DNA of 64,000 nt, taken from NCBI RefSeq assembly GCF_020745735.1, contig NC_083429.1, positions 34,081,877 through 34,145,876 on the forward strand. Direction: 5' to 3'. Position numbers and translations under genes: made by a program. Shown here piece by piece: positions 18,542-51,084 of this stretch. The stretch's first letter is position 1, and each line of letters begins with the position of its first letter. This DNA comes from Hemiscyllium ocellatum (taxonomy: Eukaryota). Below the pieces are notes generated by a model. That model was not told the DNA's origin. It searched no databases and saw only the letters and a program-made list of their open reading frames with translations.

Positions 18542-19100
18542 CGATGACCGGCGGCCGGCACGGCCAATCTGAGCGACGGCAGCTTGGCGACGGCGCCCCG
18601 CCCACCTCGCGGCAGCAGTGTCGCAAAGCGGCGGGAGTCTCGAGCGGGAGGCTGTCGCTGAGCGGGAAGGCGCGCGGTTCCACAGAGAGTGACGGTTAAT
18701 GTCGCCAAGTGGTGACCGCCAAAACACTCAGTGGCGCTGACACTCCACACACAGTGTACGGTGACCACATTCCCCACTCCCAGCCGCACTCGCTGGGATG
18801 TGGATGAAGGGCTATCCTGCTCCCCTCAAGGCCCGGGGCTCTCTTGCTCCTCTGTGCGTCACGGGGTTTTGGCTTCGCCCGCTCCCGAGAGAGAGAGAAA
18901 ACAAAAAAAAAAGTCACGGCAGAGTTGTGAGATTCTGGAGTGAAGCGGGGCGCTTGAGATGCTAATTGAAGGGAAATGTGAGACGCCGATGAAGGAGAGT
19001 GCATGAAGGGGGAAGAGAGGGTGAATGGGGGGACGCTGAGTGAAGGAGTGTGGGGCAGGAAAAGCTCAGCAGGCCGAGCAGCAGGAGAATCGACATAAGA
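18330..19100. promoter_or_regulatory. REXO2 CpG island and promoter (CCAAT 18564-68, GC box ~18596-18603)
   Basis: Dense CpG over exon 1 and upstream, in an otherwise CpG-depleted window. Confidence 0.8.
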
Positions 19101-19739
19101 CAGGAGTGGGAATAAGGCCATTGGGCCCATTGAGACCATTCCGCCGTTTAGGCATGGCTGATGGGCATTTCAACAGCACCTCCCGCACTCTCACCGTAGC
19201 CCCGTAATTCCTTGCGAGGGCAAGAATTAATCAATCTCTGCCTTGAAGACATTTATAGTCCAGGCCTCATTCTGGGAATAAGCCCTTCCCAGGTGGAAGG
19301 GAAAGCAAGACATGGAGCGAAGAAGTTGAGTGAAACACCCGGGTGAAGGCTAGAGCTTGGGGTCATACGATGGAGAGAGCTTGAGTCAGAGTGAGGGAGA
19401 GCAAGACCTGGAGTAAAGAGTTAGAGCGAGATGTAGAATGAACGTGGTCTCAGAGAGAGCTGTGAGAAGCAGGAAAAATGAGATTCAGTTAAGAGGGAGA
19501 ATGAGACAGTAAGTGAGATGCCGGATGAAAGGTGTGAGTGTAGAATTGCAAAACACTGGGGGGGGGGGAGAATGTGAGAAGGGCTGAGCAAGATGCTGAG
19601 TAAATGGGAAAGGGAGAGTGTGACACCATTGGGGAAAGAGACCAAGAAGGTTGAGAGAAAATAAGTGAGACACAATAATAGAGTGAATGATGCCAAATGT
19701 AAAAGTTAATTAAGTAGTTTTGGCTGAGCAGGTGATGTG

Positions 19740-20160
19740 TTGTAGCTGTATGATGGGGACTGGCTGATCCCATTGTGAATGGCAGTGAGGCTGTGGAAAG
19801 ATTTAGACAGTTTAGGAGAGTGATCCAGGAAATGGCTGATGAAATTCAACGTCAGCAAATGTGAGGTCTTCCATTTTGGAAAAATGAATACAGGAATCAA
19901 CTATTTTCTAAACGGTGAGAAAATTTATAAAGCCGAAGTATAAAAGAATCTGGGAGTGTAACCCAGGATTCTCTAAAATTTAACTTGCAGGTTGAGTCCG
20001 TGATTAAGAAAGCGAATGTAATGTCATTAATCTCAAGCGGGTTGGAATGTAAAAGCAGCGATGTGTTTTTGAGAATTTATCAAGCTCTAATTAGGCCACG
20101 TTTAGAAACTGACCAATTTTGGGCTCCATGCCTCAGGAAGGACATACTGGCATTGGGTAG
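19740..20160 (+). mobile_element. CR1 RT fragment
   Basis: ..IYQALIRPRLE..QFWAPCLRKDI peptide. Confidence 0.8.
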
Positions 20161-21410
20161 TGTCAGGGCTCTCACAGACACACTAAATGATTGAGTTCTA
20201 AGCTGCTACAGTGAAGTCTTAGAGGAGAAGTTTCCTCAAAAATCCAACCGGGCATATTGTTTTTTTTCTCTGGACAGGTCAGAGGCAGCAGGTGAGATCC
20301 AAAACTGTTTTGCTAAAGGCATTTTTGTCATATGCTGTGTTTATAGAATGCTGTGGATATCAGAGCAGCTGAGGATTAGTGGTTAAAAAAGATGTTATCC
20401 TAGTTTATATTTCAATAGAGTTAGTTATGTCAGTTCTTTTCATTTGTATTTTAACTATGTTGTAAGAATAACGTGTTTTGCTTTAAGCCTTGTAGTGGAC
20501 CAGTTGAATTTCATCTGAAACACAGTGCCTTTTACTTGCCTTCAAATAGATATAAAAGTTAGCTTTTTCAAAGATAGGGGTGCTTGTCTGGTCCACAACA
20601 ATATTGATGATTTGTCCAGGATAGAATTGGGTGGCACGGTGGCACAGTGGTTAGCACTGCTGCCTCACAGCGCCAGAGACCCGGGTTCAATTCCCGACTC
20701 AGGCGACTGACTGTGTGGAGTTTGCACATTCTCCCCGTGTCTGCGTGGGTTTCCTCCGGGTGCTCCGGTTTCCTTCCACAGTCCAAAAAAAAATGTATAG
20801 GTTAGGTGAATTGGCCTTGCTAAATTGCCCGTAGTGTTAGGTGAAGGGGTAATGGTAGGAGTATGGGTGGGTTGAGCTTCAGCGGGTCAGTGTGGTCTTG
20901 TTGGGCCGAAGGGCCTGTTTCCACACTGTAAGTAATCTAATGATTCCAGTTTGGGTTTTGGAATATTGGACCAAAAAATAGTGTTCTCTTTTCAAGTGTT
21001 GCAATCAGTTGGTGAAAATAAGGTGTGCCTTGTGTAATAATGGCTCTTTCGGTGTCTTTGGAAGTGGAAGGCATCACTTGGGATGGTTTACAGAAGGTGA
21101 ATAAGGACACAGTTTTGGAATTGGCAGGCCAGCTGATGATGGAGTTGCCTGTGTCTGTGAGTAAAAAGATAATTGTAGCAAGACCTCAATATTTCCAATA
21201 GCCAAAAATGGAATTGCAATTATTAGAGATCTCCAAAATTCACTAGCAAATGAAGCAAATTGAATTAGAGGGAATGACAAAGGGGAAAGAAGGAGAAACA
21301 AAAGAAAGATAATTGCAGGGGAACAAAGAACAAAATAATTAAATTAGCTTGAGAATGAAAAGGAAATTAAAGAGTTTGAGTTAAGATTAAAAGCAGAGGA
21401 CGTCAAGTGA
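20161..21410 (+). mobile_element. Array unit 1: partial LTR (to 20600), PBS 20605-20622, SINE insertion, gag stub from ATG 21040
   Basis: Homologous to the other units. LTR ends ...gtccacaACA. Confidence 0.75.
20629..20941 (+). mobile_element. HE1/V-SINE (tRNA-derived)
   Basis: A box TGGCACAGTGG, B box GGTTCAATTCC, V-domain, AATCT tail. Confidence 0.9.
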
Positions 21411-22968
21411 AGAAGAATAAATCGCTGAGTGGAAAACAAAACTAAATGCTGAGTGAAGGAGTCTGAGACATCATGCAAAGGAACAGAGTGATAAGACAAT
21501 TCAAGAGGAAAGTGAGCCGGCGAGAGAGGTCATCGAGTGAAGAGGTTGAGCCAGCCCATGCATGAATGGGGAAGAGAGAGCTGGCAAGTAAAGAGAAGGT
21601 GACACAGTGGGAACAGGGCAAGCAAGATGCTGTGAGGAGAGAAAAATGAGACGCCGATTGAAGGAGAGCAAGATGCCATGTGAAATGTGAGACACACTGA
21701 GCAAAGGAGGAGAATGAAACAAGTGAAAGGACAGGAAAAAACTGAGAGAAAGAGGAAAGGAAAGGCTTAGTGAAAGGGCACAGCGAGACACTGAGAGAAG
21801 GAAGAGGGTGAGATGTTGAGTGATGGAGAAGAGTGAGATGAAGAAGAAAAGGAAAGAGTATGTTGCTAACTCAAGGAGAGTGAAATGCCAAGCGAAGAGG
21901 GAGAGTGAGATACTGAGTGAAGTAGAAGAGCAAGACGTTAAGTGAAGGAGATCAAAATGTTGACGGAAGATGTTACATGAGACGTTGACTAATGGAAAGT
22001 GACTGACCAGGTGAAGGAAAGTAAAACACAGTGAAGGATGGACTGAGATGACAATTAAAGTATAGCAAGACCCCGACTGAAGGAAGGGCGTGAGACATGG
22101 AGTAAAGGAGGGAGTGAGATGCCGAGTGAAGAGGGAAATGAGTCGACAAGTGGACAGAGAGCACGAGGTGCCAAGTGAAGGAGAAACTGACTGAATGAGA
22201 AGAGCAAGACATTGAGTAAAGTGGAGACTATGACACTGAGTGAAGAAGGAGAACAAGATGTTATAAGGAGAGAAAAATGCCAAGAGAGGAGGGAGGACGT
22301 GATACTGAGTGAACTGGGAGAGCAAGATTTGAAATACAGGTGAGGCAACACTGAACGAAGGGATTATATGAAATGCTGAGTGACGGAAAGTCACTAACTG
22401 AATGAAGGCAAGCAAGACACCTAGTAAAGGAGGGAGGTAGGATACAGAGTGAAGGAGAGCAAGATACCAGTTCAAGGAGAAGTGCGAGACACTGGAGTGA
22501 AGGAGGGAGTGAGATCCCGATTGAAGGAAAATGAGAAACATGTTAGATGAGAGTGAGAAGAAGAGTCAAGAGGAAAATAATTCGTCAAGTGAACAGAGAG
22601 ATTAAGATGCTGAGCAAATGGGGATACTGAGGTAGCAAGTGATGAGGGTGAGATATGGAATGAAGTGGAAAGCATGACACTGAGTGACCAAGATGAGCAA
22701 GAGGCCATATGAAGAGGAAAGTGAGGTACTGATTGAAGGAGTGCAAAATGCTAAGTGAGGAGGGAGAATGTGATACCAAGTGAAGTGGGCGAGCAAGATG
22801 TGAAGGAGAGCAGCATATTGAATGAAGATATTACATGAGATGCTGAGTGACGGAAAGTGACTAAGTGGGTGAAGGAAAGCGAGACACCGAGTGAAGGAGG
22901 GAGGGAGATGCAGAGTGAAAGAGATATCGAGTGAAGAAAGAGAGCAAGGCATGGAGCAAAGAGGTAAT

Positions 22969-23281
22969 GATTAGATTATTTACAGTGTGGAAACAGGTCC
23001 TTCGGCCCAACAAGACACGCTGACCCACTGAAGCGCAACCCACCCATACCCCTACCATTACCCCTTCACCTAACACTACGGGCAATTTAGCAAGGCCAAT
23101 TCACCTAACCTGCACATTTCGTTTTTGGACTGTTGGAGAAAACCAGAGCACCCGGAGGAAACCCACACAGACACGGGGAGAATGTGCAAACTCCACACAG
23201 TCAGTCGCCTGAGTCGGGAATTGAACCCAGGTCTCTGGCGCTGTGAGGCAGCAGTGCTAACCACTGTGCCACCGTGCCTCC
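22969..23281 (-). mobile_element. HE1/V-SINE, inverted copy carrying the 5' flank of the 20629 copy
   Basis: Reverse complement of the 20629 SINE. Confidence 0.9.
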
Positions 23282-24007
23282 CAATTCTATCCTGGACAAA
23301 TCATCAATATTGTTGTGGAGATGCCGAGTGAGGGAGAACGTGATACATGTAGGATCAGAGTGAGAAGAAGAATCAAGTGGAAAATGTGTCACCAATTGAG
23401 AAGTAGACACTGAGTGAAAGGGGACTGAGATACTGAGTGAAAGGGGACAGCAGTACGAGTGAAGGAGAGAGTGTGATACTGAGTGAACTAAGAGAACACA
23501 AAGCCATGAGAAGGAACAAGTGTGTTGCTGAATGAAGGAGAGCAGGGCGCAAAGTGACAGGGGAGAGCAAGACACTGAGCAAAGGAGGAGGATGAGATGT
23601 TGAAGGGGGAAATTGAGGTACCGAGAGGTAGATATTGAGATGCTGACTGAAGGGGAGTAACATGCAATTTGAAGCAGGGAGTGAGCTACTGAGTGAAGGA
23701 TAATGAGACACCGAGTGAAGGAGCGAGTGAGACACTGAGTAAAGAAGAGAAAGACACCAAGTAAATGAGAGAATGAAATTCCAAGAAATAGTGAGTGAGA
23801 TCCTGAGTGGAGGATAGTGTGTAATTACAGGTGAAGGAGCGTGAGACACCATGCGAAATAGGAGACAGAAGACACTAGTCAAAAGGAAAATAAGTAAAGT
23901 GAATAGAGAGCACAATACGCTGAGTGAAGGGGCGATTGAAATAGTGAAGGAGAACAGCGGGATGTTTAGTGAATGTGGAGAGTCAGATGTCAAGTGAACG
24001 TGGTCAG

Positions 24008-24750
24008 TATAACAGTTCTATGCTTTAAAGTGAGATGTGTTCTGTTTCTGTTGCAGAGAGATTTTGCCATGATGGTGTTAGAATGTATCCTTCAGACAGG
24101 CAGTTGATATCAGCCTTTGAAGTCTCTTTGGGTTTATTTTGTGAATGCAACGAATGAAGTGGTTAGCATCAGGGCTGTCACAGACAGAGTGGTATTTACT
24201 TTTGCTTTTAGTTGGTCAGTAAGAAGGTTTCCGCGGACACTGAACTAAATGTTTGAGTTCCAAACTGCTAGAATGAAGTCTTAGACAAGAGATTTCCTCT
24301 TAAAAATCCAAGGGGCATGTGTTGCTTTCTCTTGGACTGGAGTCAGGCAGGAGATGTGATCCAGAACTGTTTTGATAAACGCATTTTTGTCCAAGGCTGT
24401 GTTTATAGGATGCTTCGGATACTGGAACAGCTGAGGATTAGCAGTTAAATAAGATGTCATCTTGGAATGTATTTCAATAGAGTTAGTTATGCCAGTTCTT
24501 CTTTTCATTTGTATTTGAACTGTAAGAATAAGGTGTGTTTTGCTTTAAGCCTAGTAGTGGACCAATCGAATTTCATCTGAAACACAATGCCCTAAACTTG
24601 CCTTTAAATATATAAGTTTGGGTCTTGCCTACCTCTTCACAACATTTTTGTTTGAAGATGGTGGTGTCCTGTCTGGATCACAACAAAATTGATGATTTGT
24701 CCAGGATGGAGATCTCTGATTCCAGTCTGGGTTCAGGAATATTGTGACAA
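24008..24750 (+). mobile_element. Array unit 2: full LTR 24008-24685 and PBS 24690-24707; gag deleted
   Basis: tataacag...cacaaca followed by TGATGATTTGTCCAGGAT. Confidence 0.75.
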
Positions 24751-25029
24751 ACTGGGTGACAGAAAGCGATAGAGAAGGAGGGAATAAGATGCGTAGTGAT
24801 GGAGAGCAAGATACCAAGTGAAGGAGAAGAGCAAGAAACGAGTGAAGGAAGGAGTTAGATGCCACGTGAACGAAAATGAGATCCATGTAGGATGAGAGTG
24901 AGAAGAAGAGTCAAGTGGAGAATAAAGCGCCAGGTGAACAGAGAGTATGATGATGAGGAATAATCCTTGGCACAACATCGTGGGCTGAAAGGACTGTTCT
25001 GTGCTGTACCATTCTATGTTCTGTGTTCT

Positions 25030-26015
25030 ACCATCACAACGTGCACTGGGCCTCACAGGGCTGTGTGCTCATTCCATTGCTGTTCACCCTGCTAACACTG
25101 TGCAGTAATGCAGAGGTCAAATCACATCATCAAGTTCGCTGATGATGCAACTGTTGTTGGTCTCCTCAGCAGGAACGACATGTCAGCATACAAAGAGGTG
25201 GCGCAATGGCTAATAGACTCATGCAGAGCCAATAAACTGTCTTTGAACATGGACACGACCAAAGAAACGGTTGTTGACTTAAGGAGGCGTGGACTGACCC
25301 TCTCTGCTGGACATTGACGGCTCCACAGTGGAGGTCATGAAGAACACCAAATTTCTTGGCGTACACCTGGCGGAGAATCTCACCTGGACCGCCAACACCA
25401 GCTCCATAGCCAAGGAAGCCCAGCAGCTTCTCTACTTTCTGCGCAGGCTGAGGAAACCCCGCATCCTCACCACATTCTACAGAGGGTTCATTCGGAGTAC
25501 CTTGAGCTGCTGCATCACTGCCTTGTTTGGGAATTGCACTGTCTTGGATCCTAAGACCCTACAATGGATGGTGAGGGCAGCTGAGAAGGTCATCGGGTCT
25601 TTCTTCCCCCTATTAAAGGCATTTACACCTCACATTGCATCCGAAAAGCTAAGAGCATTGTGCAAGACCCACATACCCCTCATTTAAACTCTTCTCCCTC
25701 CTGCCATCTGGCAGAAGATACTGGAGCATTCGATCTCTCATGGCCAGATTGCAAGTTTCTTCTCTCAAGCCATTAGGCTCCTTTCCACAGTATGATCGGA
25801 CTCTTTCCCATCTGAAATTCTTTACATGACTTCAAAGTGCTGAAAAAATGTTTATTATTTATCATTCTTTTATTACATTATAACTTGCACATCTTGCACA
25901 TCTTATGCACTTTATGCTGTGTAGTTTTTGCTGTCCATGTAGCACCCTTGGTCCTGGAGGAACACTGTCTCGTTTTTACTGTATCAGTTGTGTGTGGTGG
26001 AAATGACAAGAGTTG
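25030..26015 (+). mobile_element. Rex1/Babar-type LINE 3' fragment; second copy at 43248-43958
   Basis: IIKFADDATVVGL and [22 protein letters not shown] peptides. Confidence 0.85.
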
Positions 26016-26017
26016 AG

Positions 26018-26054
<37 letters not shown>

Positions 26055-26129
26055 GAGACAAGTCAAAAGGAAAATGAGTCACCAAGTGAATACAGAATAC
26101 AAGGCACCAAGAGAAAGGGAGATTAAAAT

Positions 26130-26725
26130 TGTTGTGGTTCTGTTCGCCGAGCTGGGGATTTGTGTTGCAGATGTTTCGTCTCCTGTCTAGGTGACATCCT
26201 CTGTGGTTGGGAGCCTCCTGTGAAGCGCTTCTGTGATGTTTCCACCGGCAGTTATGGTGGTTTGTCTCTGCCGCTTCCGGTTGTCAGTTCCAGCTGTCCG
26301 CTGCAGTGGTCGGTATATTGGGTCCAGGTTGATGTGCTTATTGATTGAATCTGTGGATGAGTGCCATGTGTCTAGGAATTCCCTGGCTGTTCTCTGTTTG
26401 GCTTGTCCAATAATAGTAGTGTTGTCCCAGTCGAACTCATGTTGCTTGTCATCCCCATGTGTGGCTACTATGGATAATTGGTCGTGCCGTTTCGTGGCTA
26501 GTTGGTGTTCATGGATACGGATCGTTAGCTGTTTTCCTGTTTGTCCTATGTAGTGTTTTGTGCAGTCCTTGCATGGGATTTTGTACACTACGTTGATTTT
26601 GCTCATGCTGGGTATCGGGTCCTTCGTCCTGGTGAGTTGTTGTCTGAGAGTGGCTGTTGGTTTGTGTGTTGTTATGAGTCCTAGTGGTCGCAGTAGTCTG
26701 GCTGTCAGTTCAGAAATGTTCTTGA
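26130..26725 (-). mobile_element. Penelope-like element 3' fragment (GIY-YIG endonuclease)
   Basis: NVVYKIPCKDCTKHYIGQTGKQL..RIHEH peptide. Confidence 0.92.
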
Positions 26726-26801
26726 TTGAAATAGCAAGTGAAGGAAAATAGTGAGGTGTTGAGTGAACGTGGAGAGTTCAATTTCAAGTGAACATTGTTA
26801 G

Positions 26802-27950
26802 TATAAAAGTTATTTGCTTTTGAGTGAAACGTGTTCTGTACGTTTTGGCTTGCAGAGAGATTTAGCCACAATGATGTTAGAATGTGTGCCTCAGATGGGC
26901 ACTTAATATCAGCCTTTGAAGTCTCATTTGGTGTATTTTGTTATTGAGACAAAAGGAGCATGAATAGGTAATGTCAGGCTCTCTCAGATACAGTGGTGTT
27001 TAATTTTGCTTTCAGTTGGTTAATGAGAAGGTTTGGGCTGATACTGAACTAAATGGTTGAGTTCCAAGCTGGGAGAGTGAAGTCTTAGATGTGAGGTTTC
27101 TTCTTAAAACTCCAGAGGGGCATGTTGTTGCTTTCTTCTGGACTGGAGAGAGGCAGCATTAAAGATCCAGAATCTTTTTGGTAAATTCAACTTTGCCAAA
27201 AGCTGTATTTATAGGATGGTGCGGATATTAGAACAGCTGAGGATTTGTTGTTACATTCCAAGATAACGTCTTATTTATTTCAACAGCATTAGTTATGCCA
27301 ATTCTTTTCATTTGTATTTAAACTATGTTATAAGAATAAAGTTCTGCTTTAAACTTAGTGGTTGACCAAACAAATTTTATCTGAAACACAGTGCTTTCTA
27401 CTTGCCTTTGAATAAGTATAAAAGTTAGGGTCTACTTATCTCTGCACTGCATTTTTTTGTGAATTCCAGTTTGGGTTTCGGAATATTGGACCAAAAGATA
27501 CTGAGTAGTGAGAGTTGCAGTCGGTGAAAATAAGGTGTGCCATATGTACTAATGACTCTTTCAGTGGCTGAGAGTTCCTGGACGTGGATGAAGTAACTTG
27601 GTTTGGTTTACAGAGTATGAGTAAGGTGAACGATTTAGAATTGGCAAGAAAGCTTATGTTGGAGTTGCTTATATCTGTGAGTTAAAGGAAGATAATTGTA
27701 GCAAGAGCTCAGTAGTTCCAATTGCCAGGAATGCAATTGCAATTATTAGAAATGTCTAAATATCAATAGCAAATAAAACAAATTGAATTGTAGGAAATGG
27801 CAAAGTAGTAGAAGGAGTGACAAAAGCAAAAGAAAGAGAAATAATTACAGCAAAACAAAGAGCAAAAGAATGAAATCAGCTTGAAAATGAAAAGGAAATG
27901 AAAGAATTTGGGTTCAGATTAAAAACAGAAGATGTCAAGTGAAAAAGAAG
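26802..27950 (+). mobile_element. Array unit 3: LTR (3' end and PBS deleted at ~27462) and gag stub from 27552
   Basis: Homology to the other units; AATAAA at 27335. Confidence 0.75.
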
Positions 27951-29927
27951 AAATCGCTGAGTGAAGAAGGAAAATGAAATACTGAGTGAGGAAGAGTGTG
28001 ATGCCATGCGAAGGAAGAGATTGGTAAGACAAGTCAAGAGGAAAGTAGGTTGGCGAGAGAAGATGTTGAGTGAAGATGTCAAGCAAGCCCATGAGTGAAT
28101 GGGGAGAGATGGCAAGTAAAGAGGAATGTGACGCTATGGAAACAGGATGAGCAACATGTGATGAGGGAAAAATCAGATGCCAATTGGAGGGCGAGACACA
28201 ATGTGAAAGGCGAGACACTGAGCAAAGGAGGCGAATGAAATGAGAAATGAAAGGGCAGGACAAGACACTGACGGAGGAAAGGGACAGGCCGAGTGAAGGA
28301 TCACAGTGAGACACAGAGAAAGAATAGGGTGAGATGTTGAGTGACAGAGGAGAGTGAGATGCCATAGGAAAGGAAGGAGTGAGTTGCTGATTGAAGGTGA
28401 ATGAAGAGGGAGAGTGAGGTATCGAGTCAAGTGGGAGAGGAAGATGTGAAGTGATGGAGAGGAAAGCGTTGAATGAGGGGTTACTTGAGATACTGACTGA
28501 TGGAGAATGAATAATCAGGTGAGGGAAACTGAGACATCGAGTGAAGGATAGGAAGACTCCGACTGAAGGAAGAGAGTGAAATACGGAGTGAAGGAGGGAG
28601 TGAGATGCCGAGTCAACAGGAAAGTGAGTAGCCAAGTGAATAGAGAGCGTGAGATGCGGAGTGAAGGGGAGACTGAGAAACTGAGTGAATGAAGATAGCA
28701 AGACGTTGAGTGAAGTGGCTAGTATGATACTGAGGGTTGAAGGGGAACAAGATGTCATAAGGAGAGCGAAGCACCGAGAGAGAAGGGAGAACGATATAGT
28801 GAGTGAAGTGGAAGCAAAGGCTATGAAGTGTAAGAGAGGAAACCACTGAATGAGGTTACGTGAGATGCTGAGTGACAAAAAGTGACTCACTGGGTGAAAG
28901 ACAACAAGAGACCAAATAAGACGCACGGTGATGGATTGCAAGATACCAAGTGAAGGAGAAGACCGAGACACAGAATGAATTAGGCAGTGAAGTGCCCAGT
29001 CAACAAAATTGAGATATATGTGGTTGAGATTGAGAAGGAGAGTCAAGAGGAAAATAAATCACCAAGTGAACAGAGAGAGTAAGACGCAGAGTAATGGGGT
29101 TACTGAGATCCGGAGTGCCAAGATTGAGTAATGGAATGAAGTGGAGATTATGACACTGAGTGACCAAGGTAACCAAGATGGCATAAGAAGAGGAAAGTTA
29201 AATGTTGATTGAAGGAGAGAGAAATGCCGAGTAAGGAGGGAGTGCGAGATACTGAGTAAAGTTGGAGAATGAGAAGTGAAGGAGATCAAAATGCTGAATG
29301 AAGGGGTTACGTGAGATGCTGAGTGACGGAATCTGACCAACTGGGTGAAGGAAAGTGAGACACTGAGTGAAGGCGAAAGTGAGATGCAGAGTGAAGGCGA
29401 GGAAGATAATGAGTGAAGGAAGAGAGGGAGACACAGCGAAGAGGTCGTGAGATGTGAAGTGAAGAGACAAGGTATATGTAGGATGAGAGAAGAAGAATCA
29501 AGAGGAAAATGCATCACCAAGTGAAGAGAGAGTAAGTCTCCGAGTGTAGGGGAGACTGAGATACTGAGTGAAAGCCGAGAGCAAGGCGATGAGTGAAAGG
29601 CAGAATGTGACACGGAGAGGGAGAGCACATTGCCATTAGAAGGAGTAGATGAAGTGCTGAATAAAGGAGAACAAGACGCCAAGGGAAAAGGGAGAACAAG
29701 ATACTAAGGGACAGAGAAGGGCAAATGATGTGATAAAGTGGGGATTGGGGTCGTGACAGATGGAGAATGACACACCGTGCAAAGCAGGGATTGAGCTACT
29801 GAGTGAAGGAGAATGAGTCACTGAGTGAACGATGAAGTGAGGTGCAGAGTGAAGGAGAGCAAGATACTGAGTGAAGGAAGAGAGCCTTTATTTATGGAGT
29901 GAAGAAGATTATGAAATGCTGCGTGAA

Positions 29928-30555
29928 GGTGTTTAATTTTGATTTCATTTGGTTAGTGAGAAGGCTTCTGCTATTGAAGTAAATGATTGAGTTCCAATCT
30001 GCTAGAGTGATATCTTAGATGAGAGGTTTCTTTTTAAAATCCAAAGAGGCTTGTTGTTTCTTCTAGTCTAGAGAGAGGCAACATGTGAGATTCAGAAGTG
30101 TTTTGATAAACACATTTTTTCAAAAGCATTGTTTACAGGATGCTGTCCATATTAGAACAGCTGAGGGTTATTTGTCTTATTTTAATAGAGTTAGTTATGC
30201 AGTTCTTCTTTTCATTGGTATTTTAACTATGTTGTAAAAATAACGTGTGTTTTGCTTTAAACCTAGTAGTGGACCAATTGAATTTCACCTGAAACACAGT
30301 GCCTTCAACTTGCCTTTAAGTAATTGTAAAAGTTAGGTCTGGCCTATCTCCTCAGTACATTTTTTTTGTGAAGATGGGAGTGTCTTGTCTGGTCCACAAC
30401 GAAGTTGATGATTTGTCCAGGATGGAAATCTCACATTCCAGTTTGAGTTTAGGAATATTGGACCAAAAGATAATGAGTAGTGAAAGTTGGTGTTCTCTTT
30501 TCAACTCTAGCAATGAATTGGTCAAAATAGGGTGTGTCTTGTGTAATAATGAAGT
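29928..30555 (+). mobile_element. Array unit 4: 5'-truncated LTR, PBS 30406-30423 and leader; a further gag stub lies at ~31605-31830
   Basis: Homology to the other units. Confidence 0.72.
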
Positions 30556-40277: not shown

Positions 40278-40568
40278 GAGGAACCTCGATTATCCGAATA
40301 CCAATTAAGCAAAAATTGGATTATCCAAAGGAGATCTCAAGGTCCCGATGGAAACATTACATCAAGGAGGTGTTTCCAAAAGTGATCACATCTTTTAGTT
40401 CCTGTTTAATTACTGGAAACATCTTCAAATGACTGTCTGCCCATCCTCTCCCTCTCCCCACAGACTTTCCCTGGAGTTCTGTACCCTAAACCCTCCTTCC
40501 CAACATAATCTCTCCAACATTGTCCTATATAGGGCAAAGGTGGAACCTGTCAAAGTTGGAGTAAAAGG

Positions 40569-40617
<49 letters not shown>

Positions 40618-40834
40618 GTGCTATTTGGAGACTTACCCCACAAAGGCAACTGCAGTAGTCTTGTTGGTGTCCACTCCAGCTGCCCGGAGAGGGGGCGGGT
40701 GTGTACGAGGTTGGGGTTCTGGTGGGACACGGGGTTGGAAGCAGGAGGGGGCGGTGGTGTTGGACAGAGTTTGGGGTGGGAGGGCGGTGTTGCATGGTGT
40801 TGGGGCAGGAGGCAATGATGGGGTTGATGAACAT
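40278..40834. mobile_element. Tc1/mariner (Tigger/pogo-like) non-autonomous fragment containing a (GT)n run at ~40570-40614
   Basis: Begins GAGGAACCTCGATTATCCGAA, like the MITE terminus at 41346. Confidence 0.55.
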
Positions 40835-42115
40835 CTTTTGAACTCTCCTTGGGTGTCTTTTGCTAATATGACAGAAGAATCATGAGTGGGCAGGGTTAAG
40901 GATTTCACAGGCCCAGAAAGGTTTTTAGTTTTGCTTTAAGTTGATTAGTGAGAAGGTTTCTGCTGCTTCTGAGCTGAATGTTTGAGTTCCAAGCTGCTAG
41001 AGTGAAGTCTTAGAGGAGAAGTTTCCTCTTAAAAGTCCAAAAGGGCATGTTGCTTTCTTCTAGACTGGAGAGAGGTTGCACATGAGATCCAGAATTGTTT
41101 TGCTAAATGCATTTTTGTCAAAGGCTGTGTTTATACAATGCTGCAGGTATTAGAACAGCTGAGGATTAGTAGTTAAATAAGATATTATCTTGATATATAT
41201 TTCAATAGAGTTAGTTATGTTAATTTTTTTAAAAATTTGTATTTTAACTATGTTGTAAGAATAAAATGTGTTTTGCTTTAAGCCTTGTAGTAGACCAATT
41301 GAATTCCATCTGAAACACTGTGCCTTCCACTTGCTTTTAAATATACAGAGGAACCTTGGTTGTCTGAAGGACACGGGTGGGGAGTATTTTGTTTGGTTAA
41401 TCAAATACCGGATAATATTGTTAGCCAAGCATCGGCACTTTGTGATCTGTTCGGATAATCTGAAACTCGGTTTATTGATTGCCAGCTAATCGATATTCCT
41501 CTGTATATAAAAGTTTGGGTCTAGCCTATCTCCTCAGTACATTTTTTTTTGTGAAGATGGGGGTATCTTGTCTGGTCCACATTAAAATTGATGATTTGTC
41601 CAGGATGGAAATCTCCCATTCCCGTTTGGGTTTAGGAATATTGTACCAGAAGTCAGTGAGCAGTGAAAGTTGGTGCTCTCTTTTCAAGTGTTGCAATCAG
41701 ATGGTGAAAATAGGATGTGGCTTGTGTAATAAAGGTTCTTTCAGTGGTTAAGAGTTCCTGGGTATGGAAGAAGTCACTTCAGTTGTTTTACAGAAGGTGA
41801 GTAAGGCAAAGGTTTTGGAATTGGCAGGCAGGCTGACATTGAAATTGCCTGTGTTCGTGAGGAAACAGGAGATAATTGTAGCAAGAGCTCATATTTCCAA
41901 TTGCCAGGAATGGAATTGCAATAATTAGAAATATCTGAAATGTAATAGCAAATGAAGCAGCTTGAATTAGCGGGAATAGCAAATGAGAAAGAAGGAGAGG
42001 CAAAACGAAAAGAGAGATAATTGCAGCAGAACAATGAGCAACATAATCAATTTAGCTTGAAAATAAAAAAGTAATGGAACAATTTGAGTTCAGATTAAAA
42101 GCAGACCATGTCACG
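40835..42115 (+). mobile_element. Array unit 7: LTR (5' part lost, MITE inserted), PBS 41589-41606, gag stub
   Basis: Homology; AATAAA at ~41260. Confidence 0.75.
41346..41503. mobile_element. 158 bp Tc1/mariner-type MITE
   Basis: TIR CAGAGGAA..TTCCTCTG, TA on both sides, empty site visible in sister LTRs. Confidence 0.85.
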
Positions 42116-44794
42116 TGACGAAGGACAAATCGTTGAGTGAAGGGGGAGAATTAAATCTGAGTGAAGGATAGTGAGATACCATGCAAAGGAAGAGAGTGAG
42201 AAGACAAGTCAAGAAGAAAATGGGTCATCGAGAGAAGATGTTGATTGAAGAGGCTGAACAAGGCCATGAGTGAATGGGGAAAGAGAGGTGGCAAGTGAAC
42301 AGGGTGAGAAAGATGCTATGAGATAGGGAAAATGAGATGGGAGAGTAAGATTCCAAGTGAAGCAGCAGAACAAAGCTTCGATCAAAGGAAAGGAAAATGC
42401 TGAATTAAGGATGAAAATGAGATGCTGACTTTGAGAGTGAATACGCCATACGAAGGAGAAGAATGAGAACTCAAGTCAAGAGGAAAGTGAGTCGCTTGTT
42501 GAATAGAGAAAGCAAGATGCTGGGTGAAGTGGAGATGTAAATATTGAGTCAAGGGCAGTGAGACAACATGCAAAGGAAGAGAGTGAGAAGACGAATGAAG
42601 AGGAAAGTGATTCGCCAAGTGTATAGAGAGAGCACGAGATGCCGAGTCAGATGGTGATTGAGATACAGAGTGAAGGAGGATAGCATCACTTTAATTGATG
42701 GAGAAGAGTGAGTCTCAGGCTGAAGGAGAAGAGCGAGGCATTATGAAAAGAAGCGCAAGATGCTGAGTGAAGAGGTAGAGCAAGGCGACAAGTCTCAGTG
42801 AAGTGTGACACCAGGAGAAAGGAGAGAGAGAGAGTAACTCTGAGTGAACACGGATGGTAAGATGCTGTGAGGAGGGATAAATGAGACACTGATTGAAGGA
42901 GAGTGAGGTGTCATGTGAAATGTGAGAGCGAGACACTGAGGAAACGAGGAGAATGAAACGGGAAGTGGAAGGGCAGGGCAAGACACTGAGAAGGAGGAAA
43001 ATGAAAGGCACAGTGAAAGGGTAAGTGAGAGACAGAAGGAAGAGGGTAAGATGTTGAGTTACAGAGGAGAGCGAGATGCCAAATGAAAGGATGAAGTTCA
43101 TTGATGATTGAAGGAGAGCGAAATATGGAGTGAAGAGGGAGAGCAAAAGACTGAGTGAAGTGGGACAGCAAGACATGACATGAAGGAGAGGAAAATGCTG
43201 AATGAAGGGGCTACGTGAGGTACTGAGTGGAGAGTCAATGACTTCCCTGTGGAGATTGCAGAGCACCTGATTTCTTGGTGTACACCTGGCGGAGAATCTC
43301 ACTTGCACCCTCAACACCAGCTCCATCGCGAAGAAAGCCCAGTAATGTCTCTACTTTTGGTGCAGGCTGAGGAAAGCCCATCTCCCACTCCCCATCCTCA
43401 CCACATTCTGCAGAGGGTTCATTCAGTGTGCGTTACTGCCTCATTCTGGAATTGCACCATTTCGGTTTGTAAGACCCCACAACGAATAGTGAGGAGAGCT
43501 TAGAAGATCATTGAGGTCTGTCTTCCCTCTATACAGAAGTTTACACCACACACTGCATCCAAAAGGCTAAGAGCATTGTGGAAGACCCCACAGACCCCTC
43601 ACTCAAACTCTTCTCCCTCCTACCATCTGGCAGAAGATACTGGAACATTCGGTCTTTCGCAGTCAGACTGTGCACCAGTTTCTTCCCCCAAGCCATTGGC
43701 CTCCTTAACACAGTAAGATCAGACCCCTTCCCATCTGAAATTCTTTACATGACTTCAGATTGCTGCTAGAAAAAAAATTTATTATTTATCATTCTTCTAT
43801 TGCACTGTAACTTGCATGTTTTCACTTCTGCACTTTATGCCATGTATTATTATGTAATTCGTACTGTCCATGTAACAGCCTTGGTCCTGCCTTGTTTTTT
43901 TACTGTATCATTTGTATATGGTAGAAATAACAAACATAAAGCTACTCTACTGTACTGTAACCAGGCGAAGGAAAGCGAGACATGAAGTGATGGAGGGAAT
44001 GAGTTGCCAAGTGAAAGCAAACACGATGTGTAGGATGCGGGTGAGAGGACGAATGAAGAGGAAACTGAGTAACCAAATGAATAGTGTGTGTGAGACGCCA
44101 TGTGAATGGGAAATTTAGATACTGAGTAAAGGAGTATAATAAGACGTTGAGTGAAGGGGAGAGTATGACATTAATGAACAAGGTGAGCAAGTTGCCATAA
44201 AAAGAGGTAAATGAGATACCGATTAAATGGGAGCCAAACACTGAGCCAAGGATTGAGTGAGTTGCTTGTTGCATAGAGAAAGCAAATGGCAAGTGAAGTG
44301 GAGATTGAAATACTGAGTCAAGGAGAGCAAGACAACATGCAAAGGAGAAGAGGAAGAAGATGAGTCAAGAGGAATGGGAGTCACCAAGTGAAGAGAGAGC
44401 TTTTTGCTGAGTGAATTGGTGATGGAAGCACAGAGTGAAGGAGGATAGCAAGACTTTGAGTGAAGGGGAAGACTGAAGGAGGAGAGAGAGGCATTAAGAA
44501 AAGAAGAGTGAGATGCTGAGTGAAGAGGTAGAGCAAGACCACAAGTGATGGACAAAATGTGACACTGAGTGAACGGAGAGAGAGTGACTCTGTGTGAACA
44601 GACAGAGCAAAATGCCATGAGATGGGAAAAATGGAGAGTGAAATGCCATGTGAAAAGGGAGACAGAGAAACTGAGGAATGGAGGAGAATGAAACAACAAG
44701 TGAAAGGGTAGGGCAACACACTGAGAGAAGGAGGAAAACTCAAGCCAAGTGAAACGGCACTGCAGGAGACTGAGAGAAGGAAGATGTGATGTTG

Positions 44795-45094
44795 ATTAGA
44801 TTTAGATTAGACTTACAGTGTGGAAACAGGCCCTTCGGCCCAACAAGTCCACACCGACCCGCCGAAGCGCAACCCACCCCTTACCTAACGCTACGGGCAA
44901 TTTAGCTTGGCCAATTCACCTGACCCGCACATCTTTGTGACTGTGGGAGGAAACCGGAGCACCCGGAGGAAACCCACGCAGACACGGGGAGAACGTGCAA
45001 ACTCCACACAGTCAGTCGCCTGAGTCGGGAATTGAACCCGGATCTACAGGCGCTGTGAGGCAGCAGTGCTAACCACTGTGCCACCGTGCCGCCC
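44795..45094 (-). mobile_element. HE1/V-SINE, young copy; older copies at 50720-50985 (-) and 55783-56050 (+)
   Basis: Intact A/B boxes, V-domain and CpGs retained. Confidence 0.9.
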
Positions 45095-46470
45095 AAGTGA
45101 CGGAGGAAAGTGTTGCCGATTGAAGGAGAGTGAAACACCAAGTGAAGAGGGAGATCGAGATATTGAATGAAGTGGGCGAGCAAGACCCGAAGTGAAGGAG
45201 ACCAAAATGCTGAATGAAGAGTTTATGTGAGATATTGAGTGATGGATACTGAGTAATCAGGTAAAGAACAGTAAGACACTGAGTGAAGGAAGGAGTGAGA
45301 GTCCAAATAAAGAAGAGCAAGGCACCGAATGATGGGTGAGAGACATGGAGTGAAGGAGGGAATGAGTTGCTGAGTGAAGAAGAATGAAGTTAAGTGTAGG
45401 ATGAGAGTGAGAAAATGAGTCAAGAGGAAAGTGAGTTGGCAAGTGAATAGAGAGCATGAGATGCCAAGTGTAGGGGATACTGAGATACTGAGTGAAGCAA
45501 TGATAGCAAGATGTTGAGTGAAGTGGATAGTATGACACTGAATGAGCAAGGAGTCCAGGATGCCATAAGAAGAGAATTGATGGAGAGCAAGACATTGAGT
45601 GAAAAGTGATAACAAGATACCAAGTGGAAAAGCAAGAGGTGAAGTGCAGGAGAGCAAAATGTTGAAAGTAAGTTACTTGAGATGCTGAGTCACGGAAATT
45701 AACAGAGTAAAGGAACATGAGATACCGAGTGAAGGAGGGAGTGAGATGCAGCGAGAAAGAGAGCAAGGTACCCAGTGAAGGAAAAGAGCAAGACACTGAG
45801 TGAAAGAGGAAGTGAGATGCCAGGTGAAGGAGTATGAGATGCATGTTGGACGAGAGTGAGAAAAAGAACCAAGAGGAAAATAAGTCGCCAATGAATAGGG
45901 AGAATAAGATACTGAGTGAAATGGAGACTGAGATACCAAGTGAAATGGAATAGCAAGACGTGACTGAAGGGGGGAGTGTGACACTGAGTGAAGAGGGAGA
46001 GTAGGATGCCATGAGAAGGAGTAAGTGAGATGCTGAATGAAGGAGAGCAACGCACCAAGTGAAAAGAGGTGAGCAAGATATTGAGAGAAAGTGGAGATTG
46101 GGGTACTGAGTGATGGGGAGACACAGACCATGTGAAGCAGGGAGTGACCTCCTGAGTGAAGGCGAATGAGTCACTGAGCGAAGGAGGGAGTGATATACCA
46201 AATAAAGGAGAGAGAGAGATACCGTATGAAGGAGGGAGTGAGGTGCCAAGTAATGGAGAGTGAGATCCCGAGTGAAGGATGGAGTGAAATAGCAAGTGAA
46301 GTGGAGTGAGATGCCATATGAATTAGGAGAGTACAGAGACAAGATAAAAGGAATTTAAGTCACCAAGTGAATAGAGAGCTTGAGATAACAAGTGAAGGGG
46401 AGATTGAAATCCCGAGTTCTCTTTGTTCTTTGTTAAGGAGAATAGCAGGATGTTGACTGAATGTGGAGAG

Positions 46471-47355
46471 TGTAACAGTACTGTGCTTTTAAATGAAATG
46501 TATTCCATCCTGTTTTGCCTGCAGAGAGGCATTGCCACAATAGTGTGTTTATAGGATGTTGCGGATATTAGAACTGCTGAGGACTCATAGTGAAATAAGA
46601 CATTATATTATGATGTATTTCAGTAGAGTTAGTTATGGCAGTTCTTCTTTTCATTTGTAAAAAAAATTGTGTTTTGCTTTAAGCTTAGTGGTGGCTCATT
46701 TGAATTCCATAAACACAGTGACTTCCACTTGCCTTTAAATAAATATAAAAGTTAGGGTCTAGTTCTGTCTCCTTACTACATTTTTTTGTGTGAAGGTGGG
46801 GGTGTCTTGTCTGGTCCACAGCAAAATTGGTGATTTGTCCAAATGGAAATCTCTGATTCCAGTTTTGGTTTAGGAATATTGGACCGAAAGATAGCGAGTA
46901 GTGAAAGTTGATTGCAACAAATGTTGCAATCAGTTGGTGAAAATGGGGTGTGCTTGGTGTAATAATGGCTCTTACAGTGGCTGTGAGTTCCTGGGTGTGG
47001 AGGAAGTCACTTAGGTTGGTTTACAGAAGGTGAATAAGACAAAAGTTTTGGATTTGGCAGGCAAGCTGATGTTGGATTGTTTGTGTTTGTGAGGAAAAGG
47101 GAGATAATTGTTGCAAAACCTCAGTATTTCCAATTGCCAGAATAGAATTGCGATTATTAGAAATGTATAAAGTTCCAATAGCAAATGACGCAGCTTGAAT
47201 TGGAGGAAATGACAAAGGAGAAAGAAAGCGAGGCAAAACCAAAAGTGAGAGAGATAATTGCAACAGAACAAAGAGCAAAAGAATGAAATCAGCTTGAAAA
47301 TGAAAATAAAATGAATCAGTTTGAGCTAAGACTAAAAGCAGAGGATATCAAGTGA
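46471..47355 (+). mobile_element. Array unit 8: internally deleted LTR 46471-46823, PBS ~46828, gag stub from ATG 46965
   Basis: TGTAAC start; roughly 330 bp internal deletion near 46545 relative to unit 6. Confidence 0.75.
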
Positions 47356-47764
47356 AGAAGAACAAATCGCCAAGTGAAGGGGCAAAGTTAGATGCTGAGC
47401 AAAGGAGAGTGAGAAGAAAGTCAAAAGGAAAGTGAGTCATCTTGAGAAGAAATTGAGAGAAGAGGTTGAGAAAGACCATGAGCAAGATACGGTGAGAAAG
47501 TGAGAATGAGATGCCAATTGAAGCAGAGAAAGATACTGAGTGAAGTAGGAGAACAAAATGTGAAGTTAAGCAGAGCAAAGTGCCAAGAGAAGGGGGAAAG
47601 TCATATGCTGAGTGAAGGAGACTGAAATGCTGAATGATGAAGACCGAGACAGCATGTGAAGGAGAGTGAGAAGATGAGTGAAGAGGAATGAGAGTCCCAT
47701 TTTAAAGAGAGAGCATGATACCAAGTGAAGCGAACTTTGAAATACCGAGTGAAGAAGGTTAGCA

Positions 47765-48260
47765 ATAGAGTCAGAGAGATGTACAGTACAGAATCAGATC
47801 CTCAGTCCAACTCGTCCATTTTAACCAGATATCCTAATCTAATCTAATCCCATTTGCCAACACTTGGCTTATATCCCTCTAAACCCTTCCTATTCGGAAA
47901 CCCATCCAGATGCCTTTTAATTGCCAATCTCTACCACTTCCTCTGGCAGCTCTTAGATGCACCACCCTCTGTATGAAAAAGTTGCACCTTAGGTTCCTTT
48001 TATATTTTGCACCTCTCACCCTAAACTTATGCCCTCTAGTTCTGGACTCATCCACCCCATGTAACAGACCTGTTTATCCTATCCATGCCTCTCATAATTT
48101 TATAAATCTCTATAAAGGTCAACCCTCAGCCTCCAACTCTCCAGGGAAAGCAGCCCCGGCCTGTTCAGCCTTTTCCTGAACCCTTGCACACAATATTCCA
48201 GAAGTTGCCTAATCAATATCCTGTACAGTCGCAATATGACCTCCCAATTCCTGTAAATAC
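47765..48260 (-). mobile_element. CR1 LINE 3' fragment
   Basis: Same family as the 62031-62640 element. Confidence 0.8.
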
Positions 48261-51084
48261 TTTGACTGAAGGCGAGAGTGAGATTCAGAGTGAAGGAGGT
48301 GGTAACGGAAAGATAAGAGTCAGACGCTTAATGAAGAGGTCTAGCAAGGCAATGAGTGAAGGACAAAATGTGATGCCAAGTGAAGGGAGAGAGATGCTGA
48401 GTGAACAGGGAGAGCAAGGTGCTGTGAGATGGGGAAATAGAGACATCAATTGAAGGAGGGTGACACTTCAAGTAAATGTGTAAGTGAAACGCTGAGTGAA
48501 AGGACAGAGCAAGACACTGCGTGAAGGAGGAGAGCAAGATGCTAAAGGAAAGGAGGGAGTGAGGTGCTGAGTGAAGGAGAGCAAAACACCAAATGAAGAG
48601 GAAGAGCAAGCTACTGAGTAAAGTGGGAGAGCAAAACATGAAGTGAAAGAAAACAAAATGAGTGAAGGTGTGAAGTGAGATCCTCAGTAAAAAGGAGCGA
48701 ATAATCCGGTGAAAGAAAGTGAGACACCAAATGAAGGAGAGAGTGACATGCTGAATGGACAGCAAGATATCAAGTGAATAAAGAGGGTGATTTATGGCAA
48801 GGAGGAAATGAGATACTGATTAAAGGGAAGCAAGACACCAAAGGAAAGGGGAAAATGGGACACCAAGAGAAGAAGATAGAGGGTGTGTGTTGCCGAGTGA
48901 AGGAGATTAACATGTCAATTAAAAGGAGTGAGTGAGACATTGAGTGAAGAGGGAGAGCAAGATAATGCAACAAGGGGTAAGAGGAGGATGCTGAGTCCAC
49001 TGTTTTCCTGTATGTTTGTTTTCATTACAGATTTCAAGCCTCTGCATTATTTTACCTTTAGAATAAAAATCAATCATGAATACATCAGTTTAGCCAACTG
49101 TTTAAATACCAAACCATTATTTGGGTATATATTCAGTTGATGTGAAAACTGAATGGTTAACATTGAAGTCAGGTTTTGAAGAGCTAGAAAATATAAGAGT
49201 TTTGTTTTAAAACTTCAGGGAGGTTTTTCAGAGCCCTTTCAACAACAGTGATTGGACTAACAAGATGATATGTTTTGGGCCAGTTTTATAGAGCCGCAGT
49301 GCATTTGTGAAGTAAATGTTAACTGATACTGGACTGTTGGTGCAGAATCATGATTAAGCTAAATTTGAGAAAAGGCTGCACATTTAAGATAAGGGAAAAG
49401 ATGAAAATAAGGATGCAGACTTGATTTTGATACTTTGGGGTGATTGGAATCTAGGTGAACTTGTTAAAACAGTAGGCCAGTTGGAATACGGAACTTGGTA
49501 TGGGAGAGAAAATTGAACAGTGGAGGTTGTAAAATGAGAGAGTATTTTCAGTTCTGTAGGTAGTGATGTTAGTTAAGGTCTCAGCACAGACAATGGAAGC
49601 ACTGGAATACACACAGTGAGTTTCAAAAATGATGGAGTATTTTTAGCAGAAAATCTAAGAGGAAAGAAGTAAACTAAGGGTTCAGAACGTTACTGAGATT
49701 GTGGTCATAGGGAAGGCTCTTCTAGTTGGAGGGATCTAAGATCTGTGGATTAGCTAATGTTAAGATGGAGTTTTTCTGCTTTTCAACAAATTGGTTAGTA
49801 AGACTTGGGAAAAATTCTCATACTTTGGAAATGTGCCCTCAAGGAATGCCACTATCCTTACATCAGGAAAGCAGGTTTTCCCCTTGGCCGACTCCATGAT
49901 CATGTCTGGAAACAGCACGGCACTTAGATAAAGGTTAAAATCAAATTGGAACATACTGTTCTTACTGCCAGTTGTTTGATGCAGAACCCTGCTCTATTAT
50001 AGGCACTGTTAAAGCTCTACATTACTTTCCCCAAAGACATCTGAGGTCCATCATGTGAATCTGATGGCAAGAAAAAAACCAAACTCAGTGAAATTTGTCA
50101 TTGCACTGAGCTCAAAAGCACAGACACCATCCTCTGGAAAATGCCATAGTCTCTTGCATAGATTACTGCTGGATCCCCAAGCAGATTACTATTGAATGTT
50201 GTCTCAGACCAAACAGCATTTAGGTGATTATCACAAATCAACCAAAGCCCCCTCAAAAAACTTGCAGACTGCTGCACTGCAGATGTCTCTTGGGAAAAGG
50301 CTATAACTGATTAGTGCATAGCTCGGTCAGGATTGAAGCACTTAAGTCAGCAGAGCTTGTATGTTGGTACTTGTGAACATTGGTTCTGCATTGTGAGTTT
50401 ACAGTCAAATTATTTGATTAACAAGATAATTATAAAACAATACATCATGGACAGAAATGGTCCATTGTACCTATGCTGGAAGAGGAGCAAGGATGGATTA
50501 CAGGTGTGTAGATTCTTAACCAAACTTACTAAAGGTGAGAAAATGTTACTAAGTATGCTTTTTATCTGTTCAGATCTAGGAATGTTTTTTTTGTTTGCCC
50601 AGGAAAATGAAAAATGTCAGTCCATGGACTGGAATATTCTGGACCTGAAATTCTGCACATTCTCTGTCAGTATAACATGATGGACATGCTTTCCTTTCTT
50701 TGACCCACCTGCATTTTATCATAGAAATCCCACAGTATGGAAGGAGGCCATTTGCTCTGAAGAACATCTCACCTGGACCCTTAACCATCTACGGTAACTC
50801 ACATTCAGCATGACCAATCCACCTAATCTGTGCATCTTTAGGACTGTAGGAGGAAACCAAGGCACTGAAGAAAACCCACACAGCGGGAGAACATGCAAAC
50901 TCTACACGGACATCCAGGGCTGCAATCAAACACAAATCCGGGTGCTGTGAGGCAGCAGTATGAACCACTGAGCAACTGTGCAGCTCACAGAGCCTATTAC
51001 ACCAATGTAGCTTTGTTCATTATTCTGTACTCAAGTTATGTTCTATTGGCTTGCCAAATTGCCAGGGCAGATTTGTGTTCGGTT

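Follow-up and report, generated by a model that had tools for sequence, protein, structure and literature searches.

The window analysed here is a 64,000-nucleotide stretch of contig NC_083429.1 of the shark Hemiscyllium ocellatum (assembly GCF_020745735.1, forward strand, positions 34,081,877 to 34,145,876), and all coordinates given below count from its first nucleotide. Between the genes REXO2 and RBM7 the window contains an array of eight units in the same direction (18930-48995, + strand), which was delimited by self-BLAST, MAFFT alignment and searches for landmark motifs. A prediction made from the sequence alone had described it as a tandem array of a non-autonomous long terminal repeat (LTR) retroelement with a purine satellite as its interior. 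We consider it probable that the locus is a fossil: a tandem array whose units combine the 5' module of an LTR retroelement with a purine minisatellite.

A tandem array between REXO2 and RBM7

At its left end the array adjoins exon 1 and the GC-rich promoter of REXO2 (18134-18727, - strand), where the open frame ..MAKRMVWVDLE lies near 18.3 kb; exon 2 follows near 16.9 kb, and both exons read leftwards. To the right, a CpG island with exons 1 and 2 of RBM7 was located at 56200-57200 (+ strand). Exon 1 (..TLFIGNLDQRVTEELLFELF) lies inside the island near 56.5 kb and reads rightwards, and exon 2 (..VKIPKDKDGKSKQYAFVHF..) lies near 57.05-57.2 kb. The two divergent promoters are ~37.6 kb apart, and the array makes up ~30 kb of this spacer and explains its large size; it indeed fills most of the gap between two housekeeping promoters, as had been proposed.

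Purines account for 70-78% of the + strand across 18930-48995, save for regularly spaced islands. In the self-BLAST the first island matched seven further copies on the same strand. Comparison of the region from 17 to 52 kb with itself revealed that whole units, 2.5-5.6 kb in length, are colinear between copies at 73-84% identity, purine tracts included. Each unit opens with a copy of an LTR-like block, and the eight same-strand copies start where they had been predicted to start, their intact length of 679-688 bp agreeing with the ~685 bp assumed before. Interiors and the eight blocks follow each other in turn along the + strand, with a single block between successive interiors, so that the proposed LTR-internal-LTR-internal layout holds; the one exception is a block-less ORF (open reading frame) stub at 31560-32080.

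The minus strand of the array contains open frames of 346-375 codons (21501-22541, 27919-29046, 31927-33048 and 45257-46342), which are rich in Ser, Leu, His, Phe and Pro. We rejected these as genes; they are almost certainly composition artefacts, because a pyrimidine-rich strand permits few stop codons. Annotators should be warned of such frames, which gene-finding programs may report.

The repeated block and its putative primer site

The block begins with TGTAAC, TATAAC or CGCAAC at 24008, 26802, 34505, 37089 and 46471 (TGTAAC itself at 37089 and 46471), while the copies at 20161, 29928 and 40835 are without their 5' parts. Seven copies end in ..ACAACA or variants of it, at ~20601, 24686, 30402, 35192, 37776, 41585 and 46824. 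Long direct repeats with TG..CA ends, as in LTR retroelements, are present in the array; the ends are read from motifs. An AATAAA followed by the GT-rich GTGTGTTTTGC lies ~160 bp upstream of the block end. The original prediction had drawn attention to these ends and to an AATAAA well before the 3' end, and both were recovered. Judged by its sequence, the AATAAA with its GT-rich stretch would fit an R-U5 boundary. Immediately ahead of TGTAAC stands ..GTGGAGAG, which is short and not separable from the surrounding purine minisatellite.

An 18-mer resembling a primer binding site (PBS), TG(A/G)TGATTTGTCCAGGAT, follows 3-4 nt past the ..CACAACA block end in seven of the eight units and is deleted in unit 3. 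Compared with the tRNA-Pro primer site of murine leukemia virus (MLV), TGGGGGCTCGTCCGGGAT (PMC4587795), it agrees at 12 of 18 positions in seven units and at 13 of 18 in the best copies, whereas in the whole window, on both strands (128,000 positions), only six other sites reach 12/18. The PBS-like 18-mer described behind most blocks was found. Downstream of it lies a leader of ~125 nt.

This arrangement resembles the 5' end of MLV-type elements, in which an LTR ending in CA is likewise followed within a few nt by an 18-mer related to TGGGGGCTCGTCCGGGAT, then by a leader and the first ORF. However, the shark unit matches the primer at only 12/18 positions, and it differs in that no homology to matrix, capsid or nucleocapsid was found and in lacking pol and env. 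A Ty3/Gypsy layout and Gmr1-like fish elements had been named as the closest models. A tRNA-Pro primer site is equally a hallmark of MLV-type retroviruses. As there is no pol of this element either in the window or in the outside relative described below, the array can be assigned to no genus of Ty3/Gypsy, Gmr1 or retroviral type.

The open reading frame stub

Behind the leader, units 1, 3, 5, 6, 7 and 8 have an ORF stub, of which unit 4 keeps a truncated form and unit 2 nothing. The ATG that opens it is retained in three copies (21040, 27552 and 46965), and the stub of unit 6 is the sole one free of stops (37988-38242, 84 codons). The frame passes into a Glu/Lys-rich, coiled-coil-like stretch and then into the minisatellite, without a sharp change in base composition. 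As to the block-less partial stub in unit 4 (31560-32080), it may represent a ninth interior that lost its block, or a part of the unit may have been duplicated internally.

The stub had been described as gag-like. An ORF stub does follow the leader, in N-terminal position; its identity as gag was not supported, since Pfam gave no hit and a search of 1.84 billion proteins a single unnamed one. In that Pfam search, four stub pieces and the second ORF (ORF2) of the outside relative gave nothing above the cut-off. One stub piece matched DUF2560 with 20 bits (cut-off, 25 bits), which was taken as chance. The label "gag" would therefore be a positional guess only. The model of the N-terminal domain was modest (pLDDT 74). 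In a Foldseek comparison with the PDB it matched nothing at E ≤ 0.001; matches to the Rho N-terminal domain (TM ~0.5, E > 1), like the Atlas look-alikes SAP, Rho_N and HeH (helix-extended-helix motifs, scores 0.78-0.85), can serve as leads only.

The claim that the array contains no reverse transcriptase, RNase H or integrase of its own element was borne out. By base composition and the inventory of islands, no stretch of the array is long enough for pol, and the non-purine islands were accounted for as a tRNA-derived SINE (short interspersed element), reverse-transcriptase tails of a LINE (long interspersed element), a Penelope fragment with a GIY-YIG trace and a few short unknown pieces. ARAGORN detected no tRNA gene in the window. 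The array seems, from its sequence, to encode nothing; without a surviving ORF or a match to an Rfam family, no function is indicated.

An outside relative of the unit

A profile of the stop-free ORF pieces was searched against 1.84 billion representative proteins and gave one hit, P0001 (69 aa, E = 5e-7). This protein is unnamed, the sole member of its own cluster and encoded on L001, an 891-bp contig of a metagenome assembly in the European Nucleotide Archive (ENA). With a nucleotide identity of 62-70% and E values as low as 9e-49, L001 matches six of the stub copies in full and, in unit 4, two partial pieces. In BLAST the similarity takes in leader, ORF and at most ~270 nt of the coiled coil, and the MAFFT alignment extends upstream to the last nucleotides of the block. 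At the homologous site (..TACAACAATTGGGGGCTC..) L001 holds TGGGGGCTC, which agrees with all of the first nine bases (9/9) of the tRNA-Pro site, and it has the tRNA-Pro base at four of the five positions where the best copies of the window (13/18) deviate.

The non-coding block end and the leader are about as conserved in L001 as the ORF. Such a pattern, together with a better primer site in the relative, would be predicted by a transposon family and not by a host gene, and it supports the former. After one stop codon L001 continues with a coiled-coil ORF of 131 codons to the contig end, while in all BLAST matches the homology to the array ceases at ~position 756, before any purine repeat. The idea that the purine tract is decayed coiled-coil coding sequence was unsupported, as all homology to L001 stops there. 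A word-index protein search with ORF2 of L001 gave no hit. In scans of the metagenomes of the Joint Genome Institute (JGI), P0001 found no relative, and a 33-nt pattern common to L001 and the array found no match.

The purine minisatellite

Tandem Repeats Finder (TRF) detected periods of 22-25 and 46 bp in the purine tracts, which form a degenerate minisatellite. These tracts measure 0.2-4.2 kb and not the 2-5 kb given in the original prediction. The motif TGAGTGAAGGAGAGAGTGAGA, allowing ≤3 mismatches, occurs 24 times, each time on the + strand and within the array, against 0 expected occurrences. Between units, the tracts are 71-77% identical in register and 60-71% off register. The higher identity in register implies that whole units were copied, and also that the tract already was an old, internally diverged minisatellite at that time.

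In the old, decayed purine tract of unit 4, positions 32195-32371 form a perfect (100%) tandem duplication of 79 bp with 2.2 copies. This shows that slippage or duplication continues in the tract of this unit.

Age of the array and its presence in other samples

Pairwise Kimura two-parameter (K2P) distances between the blocks range from 0.19 to 0.35, with a mean of 0.25 for adjacent copies and 0.26 for all pairs. Alignment of the LTRs and a tree had been suggested as a check. The maximum-likelihood tree of the blocks, based on ~560 columns, is a star with terminal branches of 0.07-0.19 (median, 0.12) and unsupported inner branches of ≤0.005. The star shape and the lack of an adjacency effect indicate that all copies descend from a single progenitor, were made in a short time and since then have undergone no homogenisation; a single burst was followed by independent decay.

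Macrosatellites are kb-scale tandem units that are kept similar by concerted evolution and vary in copy number. The original comparison of the array to a retrotransposon-born macrosatellite therefore did not last, because its units differ by 16-28%, form a star tree and show no adjacency effect, and thus are not homogenised.

The sequence of unit 6 and a 10-kb stretch over units 3-5 were sought as 31-mers in other samples. Two samples of the same species, from a different study, held a fraction of 0.95-0.97 of them, and two related species held 0.08-0.25. By the rule that a change of 5% leaves about one fifth of 31-mers, the two related species diverge by roughly 4-8% over the sampled stretch, provided that it is present throughout. 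Set against the divergence of the blocks, this places the burst several times further back than the time when these species separated. Other individuals carry the array as well, so that an assembly artefact is excluded, and by inheritance from a common ancestor it has persisted in three related shark species or more.

Origin of the array and alternative histories

In the reconstruction that we favor, the unit would consist of an LTR of ~685 bp, a tRNA-Pro-type primer site, a ~125-nt leader, the beginning of a first ORF and a purine minisatellite of 22-25-bp period. The first ORF, in the position of gag, would encode a small helical domain and then a coiled coil. A single progenitor of ~3 kb may have multiplied in place, within one short episode, to eight or nine units, probably by unequal exchange between repeats (LTRs or purine tracts) that had paired out of register, with a one-step concatemer as the alternative. 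Since that burst each copy would have decayed by ~12% independently, presumably under neutrality and without homogenisation, while gaining SINE, LINE and Penelope insertions as well as deletions.

Several observations weigh against an origin from an LTR retroelement. Neither flank contains a terminal LTR, as alignment to three LTR copies scored no better there than shuffled sequence, and without terminal LTRs there is no target-site duplication at the array ends. No known family of gag, protease, reverse transcriptase, RNase H or integrase matches any sequence derived from the units (Pfam, profile and word searches); missing gag and pol homology is, however, expected for a non-autonomous remnant. 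Because whole units were copied, the boundaries of the block are read from motifs and not from independent insertions. The match to the primer site is imperfect and was scored against a single reference, the published MLV site for one tRNA, and the polypurine tract ahead of the block is only GGAGAG. Finally, L001 is a single short contig with no host assigned.

The array ends are compatible with three histories, two of which differ in how the purine minisatellite came to be linked to the 5' module. Tentatively, the tract may itself have formed the interior of a mobile LTR element that was non-autonomous and had lost pol, of the large retrotransposon derivative (LARD) or terminal-repeat retrotransposon in miniature (TRIM) type, so that LTR recombination of one complete insertion produced the array and the terminal LTRs were lost later. 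All interiors are indeed flanked by single shared blocks, the junction of tract and block is conserved, purine-rich and similar to a polypurine tract, and there are documented cases both of internal tandem repeats in LTR elements and of shared-LTR arrays (PMC7004042, PMC11899658, PMC13648407). Both ends of the array, however, are purine tract, unlike the product of a simple LTR-LTR recombination of one complete insertion, and without terminal LTR and target-site duplication two extra deletions would be required. In addition, the homology to L001 stops at ~756, ahead of any purine repeat, and no dispersed LTR-purine-LTR copy was seen within the window and the collections scanned. The earlier proposal that a satellite had replaced pol has no direct support: the early stop of the L001 homology, the ends without LTR and the age of the tract at the time of the burst fit equally well with an element that had landed in a local minisatellite. 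In that history, which is possible but far from established, an LTR element inserted into a purine minisatellite already present between REXO2 and RBM7 and lost everything past the start of its first ORF; what was left of it was then carried along as a passenger and multiplied by unequal exchange between the purine tracts on either side. Array ends of purine tract and a tract that was old and internally diverged before the units were copied agree with it, the abrupt break of the L001 homology inside the coiled coil looks like a deletion breakpoint, and the minisatellite offers ample homology for misalignment. Still, a star tree without adjacency signal is not usual for stepwise unequal exchange, and outside the array no purine tract is left in the window that would show an independent origin.

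The inner branches of the star tree, which are essentially zero, would also suit a one-step concatemer, in which a circle with one LTR was copied by rolling circle and integrated via a break in the purine tract, so that all copies arose at once. Relative to the LTR the array is permuted, having interior sequence at either end, and a study in rice concluded that LTR tandems arise from a single insertion (PMC11899658). Nevertheless, we regard this as unlikely: there is no direct evidence for it, a tree of ~560 columns is compatible with a short series of duplications, and later deletions could equally explain the ends. The extended version, that all units stem from one such event (e.g., rolling-circle copying of a non-autonomous one-LTR circle that already contained the purine minisatellite, integrated via a break in the tract) and were then kept in several sharks as a spacer or boundary between REXO2 and RBM7, is quite improbable. 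Even less probable is that a host gene with a SAP/HeH-like domain and a coiled coil formed a tandem cluster here, which then decayed, with the 685-bp block as its promoter and 5' untranslated region (UTR). That no transposon protein family matches, and that the N-terminal domain resembles the cellular SAP, HeH and Rho_N motifs at lead level, would agree with such a gene; yet it leaves unexplained the TGT..ACA ends and the AATAAA within the upstream block, as well as the tRNA-Pro-like 18-mer at the exact expected place in array and L001 alike. Similarity to L001 in leader and block end is about equal to that in the ORF, and the profile search of 1.84 billion proteins found no homologue among annotated proteins. 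An artefact of assembly, in which a repeat is collapsed or falsely expanded, is a general risk for which we saw nothing specific here, and it is hardly conceivable, given units that differ by 20-30%, carry different insertions and could not be confused with each other, and a 10-kb stretch over three of them whose 31-mers are retained in the two other samples.

Comparison with known tandem arrays

Tandem arrays with shared LTRs are already known in humans and plants, and the locus is a shark example. In humans, HERV-K(HML-2) arrays contain up to six proviruses, and unequal LTR recombination was proposed for them (PMC13648407), while for LTR-retrotransposon tandems in rice and other plants a single-insertion origin was favoured (PMC11899658). 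As in these arrays, the interiors of the shark array have one orientation and single LTRs stand between them. In contrast, the shark array has eight units and is very old (~12% decay per copy versus near-identical copies), non-coding and without terminal LTRs and target-site duplications, and its interior is a purine minisatellite instead of gag-pol(-env).

The non-autonomous TRIM element Cassandra forms long tandem arrays of 12 or more units in plants (PMC7215508) and shares the LTR-interior-LTR-interior arrangement. Cassandra, however, is a tiny element that has 5S RNA sequences within its LTRs and occurs in clusters close to 5S rDNA, whereas the shark units are of 2.5-5.6 kb and have no Rfam match: a search from 17 to 52 kb returned 0 families, and thus no embedded RNA gene of the Cassandra kind. 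In Lathyrus sativus, satellites arose from short tandem repeats inside LTR retrotransposons (PMC7004042). There, too, a transposon becomes tandem DNA, and a minisatellite-like tract goes with the interior of an LTR element; but in Lathyrus the internal repeat itself expands and dispersed parents are identified, while in the shark the whole unit is repeated and the tract is a putative part of the element.

The shark array is unusual for its age, the lack of homogenisation, the interior of purine minisatellite and the missing ends. Although it reveals no new mechanism, it offers a clear and datable case in a non-mammalian vertebrate, a shark whose genome evolves slowly, of how DNA of a mobile element becomes a large tandem block. 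An array of this kind can form in a burst and survive unhomogenised afterwards for several times the age of the split between related species. It also reveals a probable retroelement lineage of elasmobranchs that is not annotated, with a first ORF that combines a domain resembling SAP (at the level of a lead) with a coiled coil and has no named relatives.

Anatomy of the individual units

All units lie on the + strand. The array opens with a leading partial unit (18930-20160) that consists of purine minisatellite only, with no LTR-like block ahead of it, and that contains a repeat fragment at ~19085-19290 and a LINE reverse-transcriptase fragment at ~19760-20160. In unit 1 (20161-24007) the block is truncated at its 5' side (20161-20601) and followed by the PBS-like 18-mer at 20605-20622. 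The 354 bp behind this primer site are a SINE insertion, which ends at 20945, and do not belong to the repeated block. The ORF start lies at 21040, and the purine tract from ~21400 contains an inverted copy at 22966-23319. Unit 2 (24008-26801) has a full block (24008-24686) and the 18-mer at 24690-24707. Here, in the absence of an ORF stub, a short purine tract follows, then a LINE fragment (25328-26009), (CT)14 and the Penelope fragment (26124-26726).

The block of unit 3 (26802-29927) starts at 26802 and has lost its 3' end together with the primer site; the ORF starts at 27552, and purine sequence extends over ~27900-29925. Unit 4 (29928-34504) has a block truncated on its 5' side that ends at 30402, the 18-mer at 30406-30423 and a truncated stub, followed by the long purine tract with the block-less partial stub and the perfect 79-bp duplication described above. 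Unit 5 (34505-37088) contains a full block (34505-35192), the 18-mer (35196-35213), a stub at 35230-35650 and purine sequence to 37088.

The best-kept block, which starts with TGTAAC, belongs to unit 6 (37089-40834) and covers 37089-37776, with the 18-mer at 37780-37797. Behind the stub ORF (37988-38242), purine sequence extends to ~40250, and an unrelated G-rich piece with (TG)22 occupies 40250-40834, where it takes the place of the first ~130 bp of the block of unit 7. This next unit (40835-46470) thus has a 5' truncated block (40835-41585), which is interrupted by an insertion of ~170 bp of unknown origin (41346-41519). It continues with the 18-mer at 41589-41606, a stub at 41620-42300 and a purine tract with a LINE fragment (43249-43933) and a SINE on the minus strand (44802-45096). 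Unit 8 (46471-48995) starts with TGTAAC at 46471, has an internal deletion in its block, which ends at 46824, and retains 17 nt of the PBS-like sequence (46828-46844). Its ORF starts at 46965, the homology of its stub to L001 is the longest of all and extends to 47435, a repeat is inserted at 47765-48180, and the unit ends at ~48995 with no terminal block.

Later insertions and other repeats

The sequence 20592-20945 (+) recurs in inverted orientation at 22966-23319 (-). This 354-bp duplicate is 94.6% identical and far younger than the array. It holds the tRNA-derived SINE plus 39 bp upstream of it, i.e., the last block bases, the PBS-like 18-mer and a few more nucleotides, and may be either a SINE copy that transduced its own 5' flank to a site 2.4 kb away or a small inverted duplication.

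Fragments of LINE reverse-transcriptase tails at 25328-25684 (+) and 43249-43933 (+) are 77.8% alike. The former matches the Pfam family ALKBH8_N (PF09004, E = 3e-14); this model evidently catches a LINE-derived segment as well and can mislead the automatic annotation of shark genomes. The Penelope fragment of unit 2 (26124-26726), which shows a GIY-YIG trace and an ORF on the minus strand (26187-26606), is ~90.6-90.8% identical to both arms of a Penelope inverted repeat in the RBM7 intron (59146-59749, +; 60485-61081, -). This identity implies that all belong to one young family, and that the insertion into unit 2 came much later than the formation of the array. A repeat of ~410 bp, of unassigned family, is present in the last purine tract (47765-48171) and again in the RBM7 gene region (62032-62456), and its two copies are 78.7% alike.

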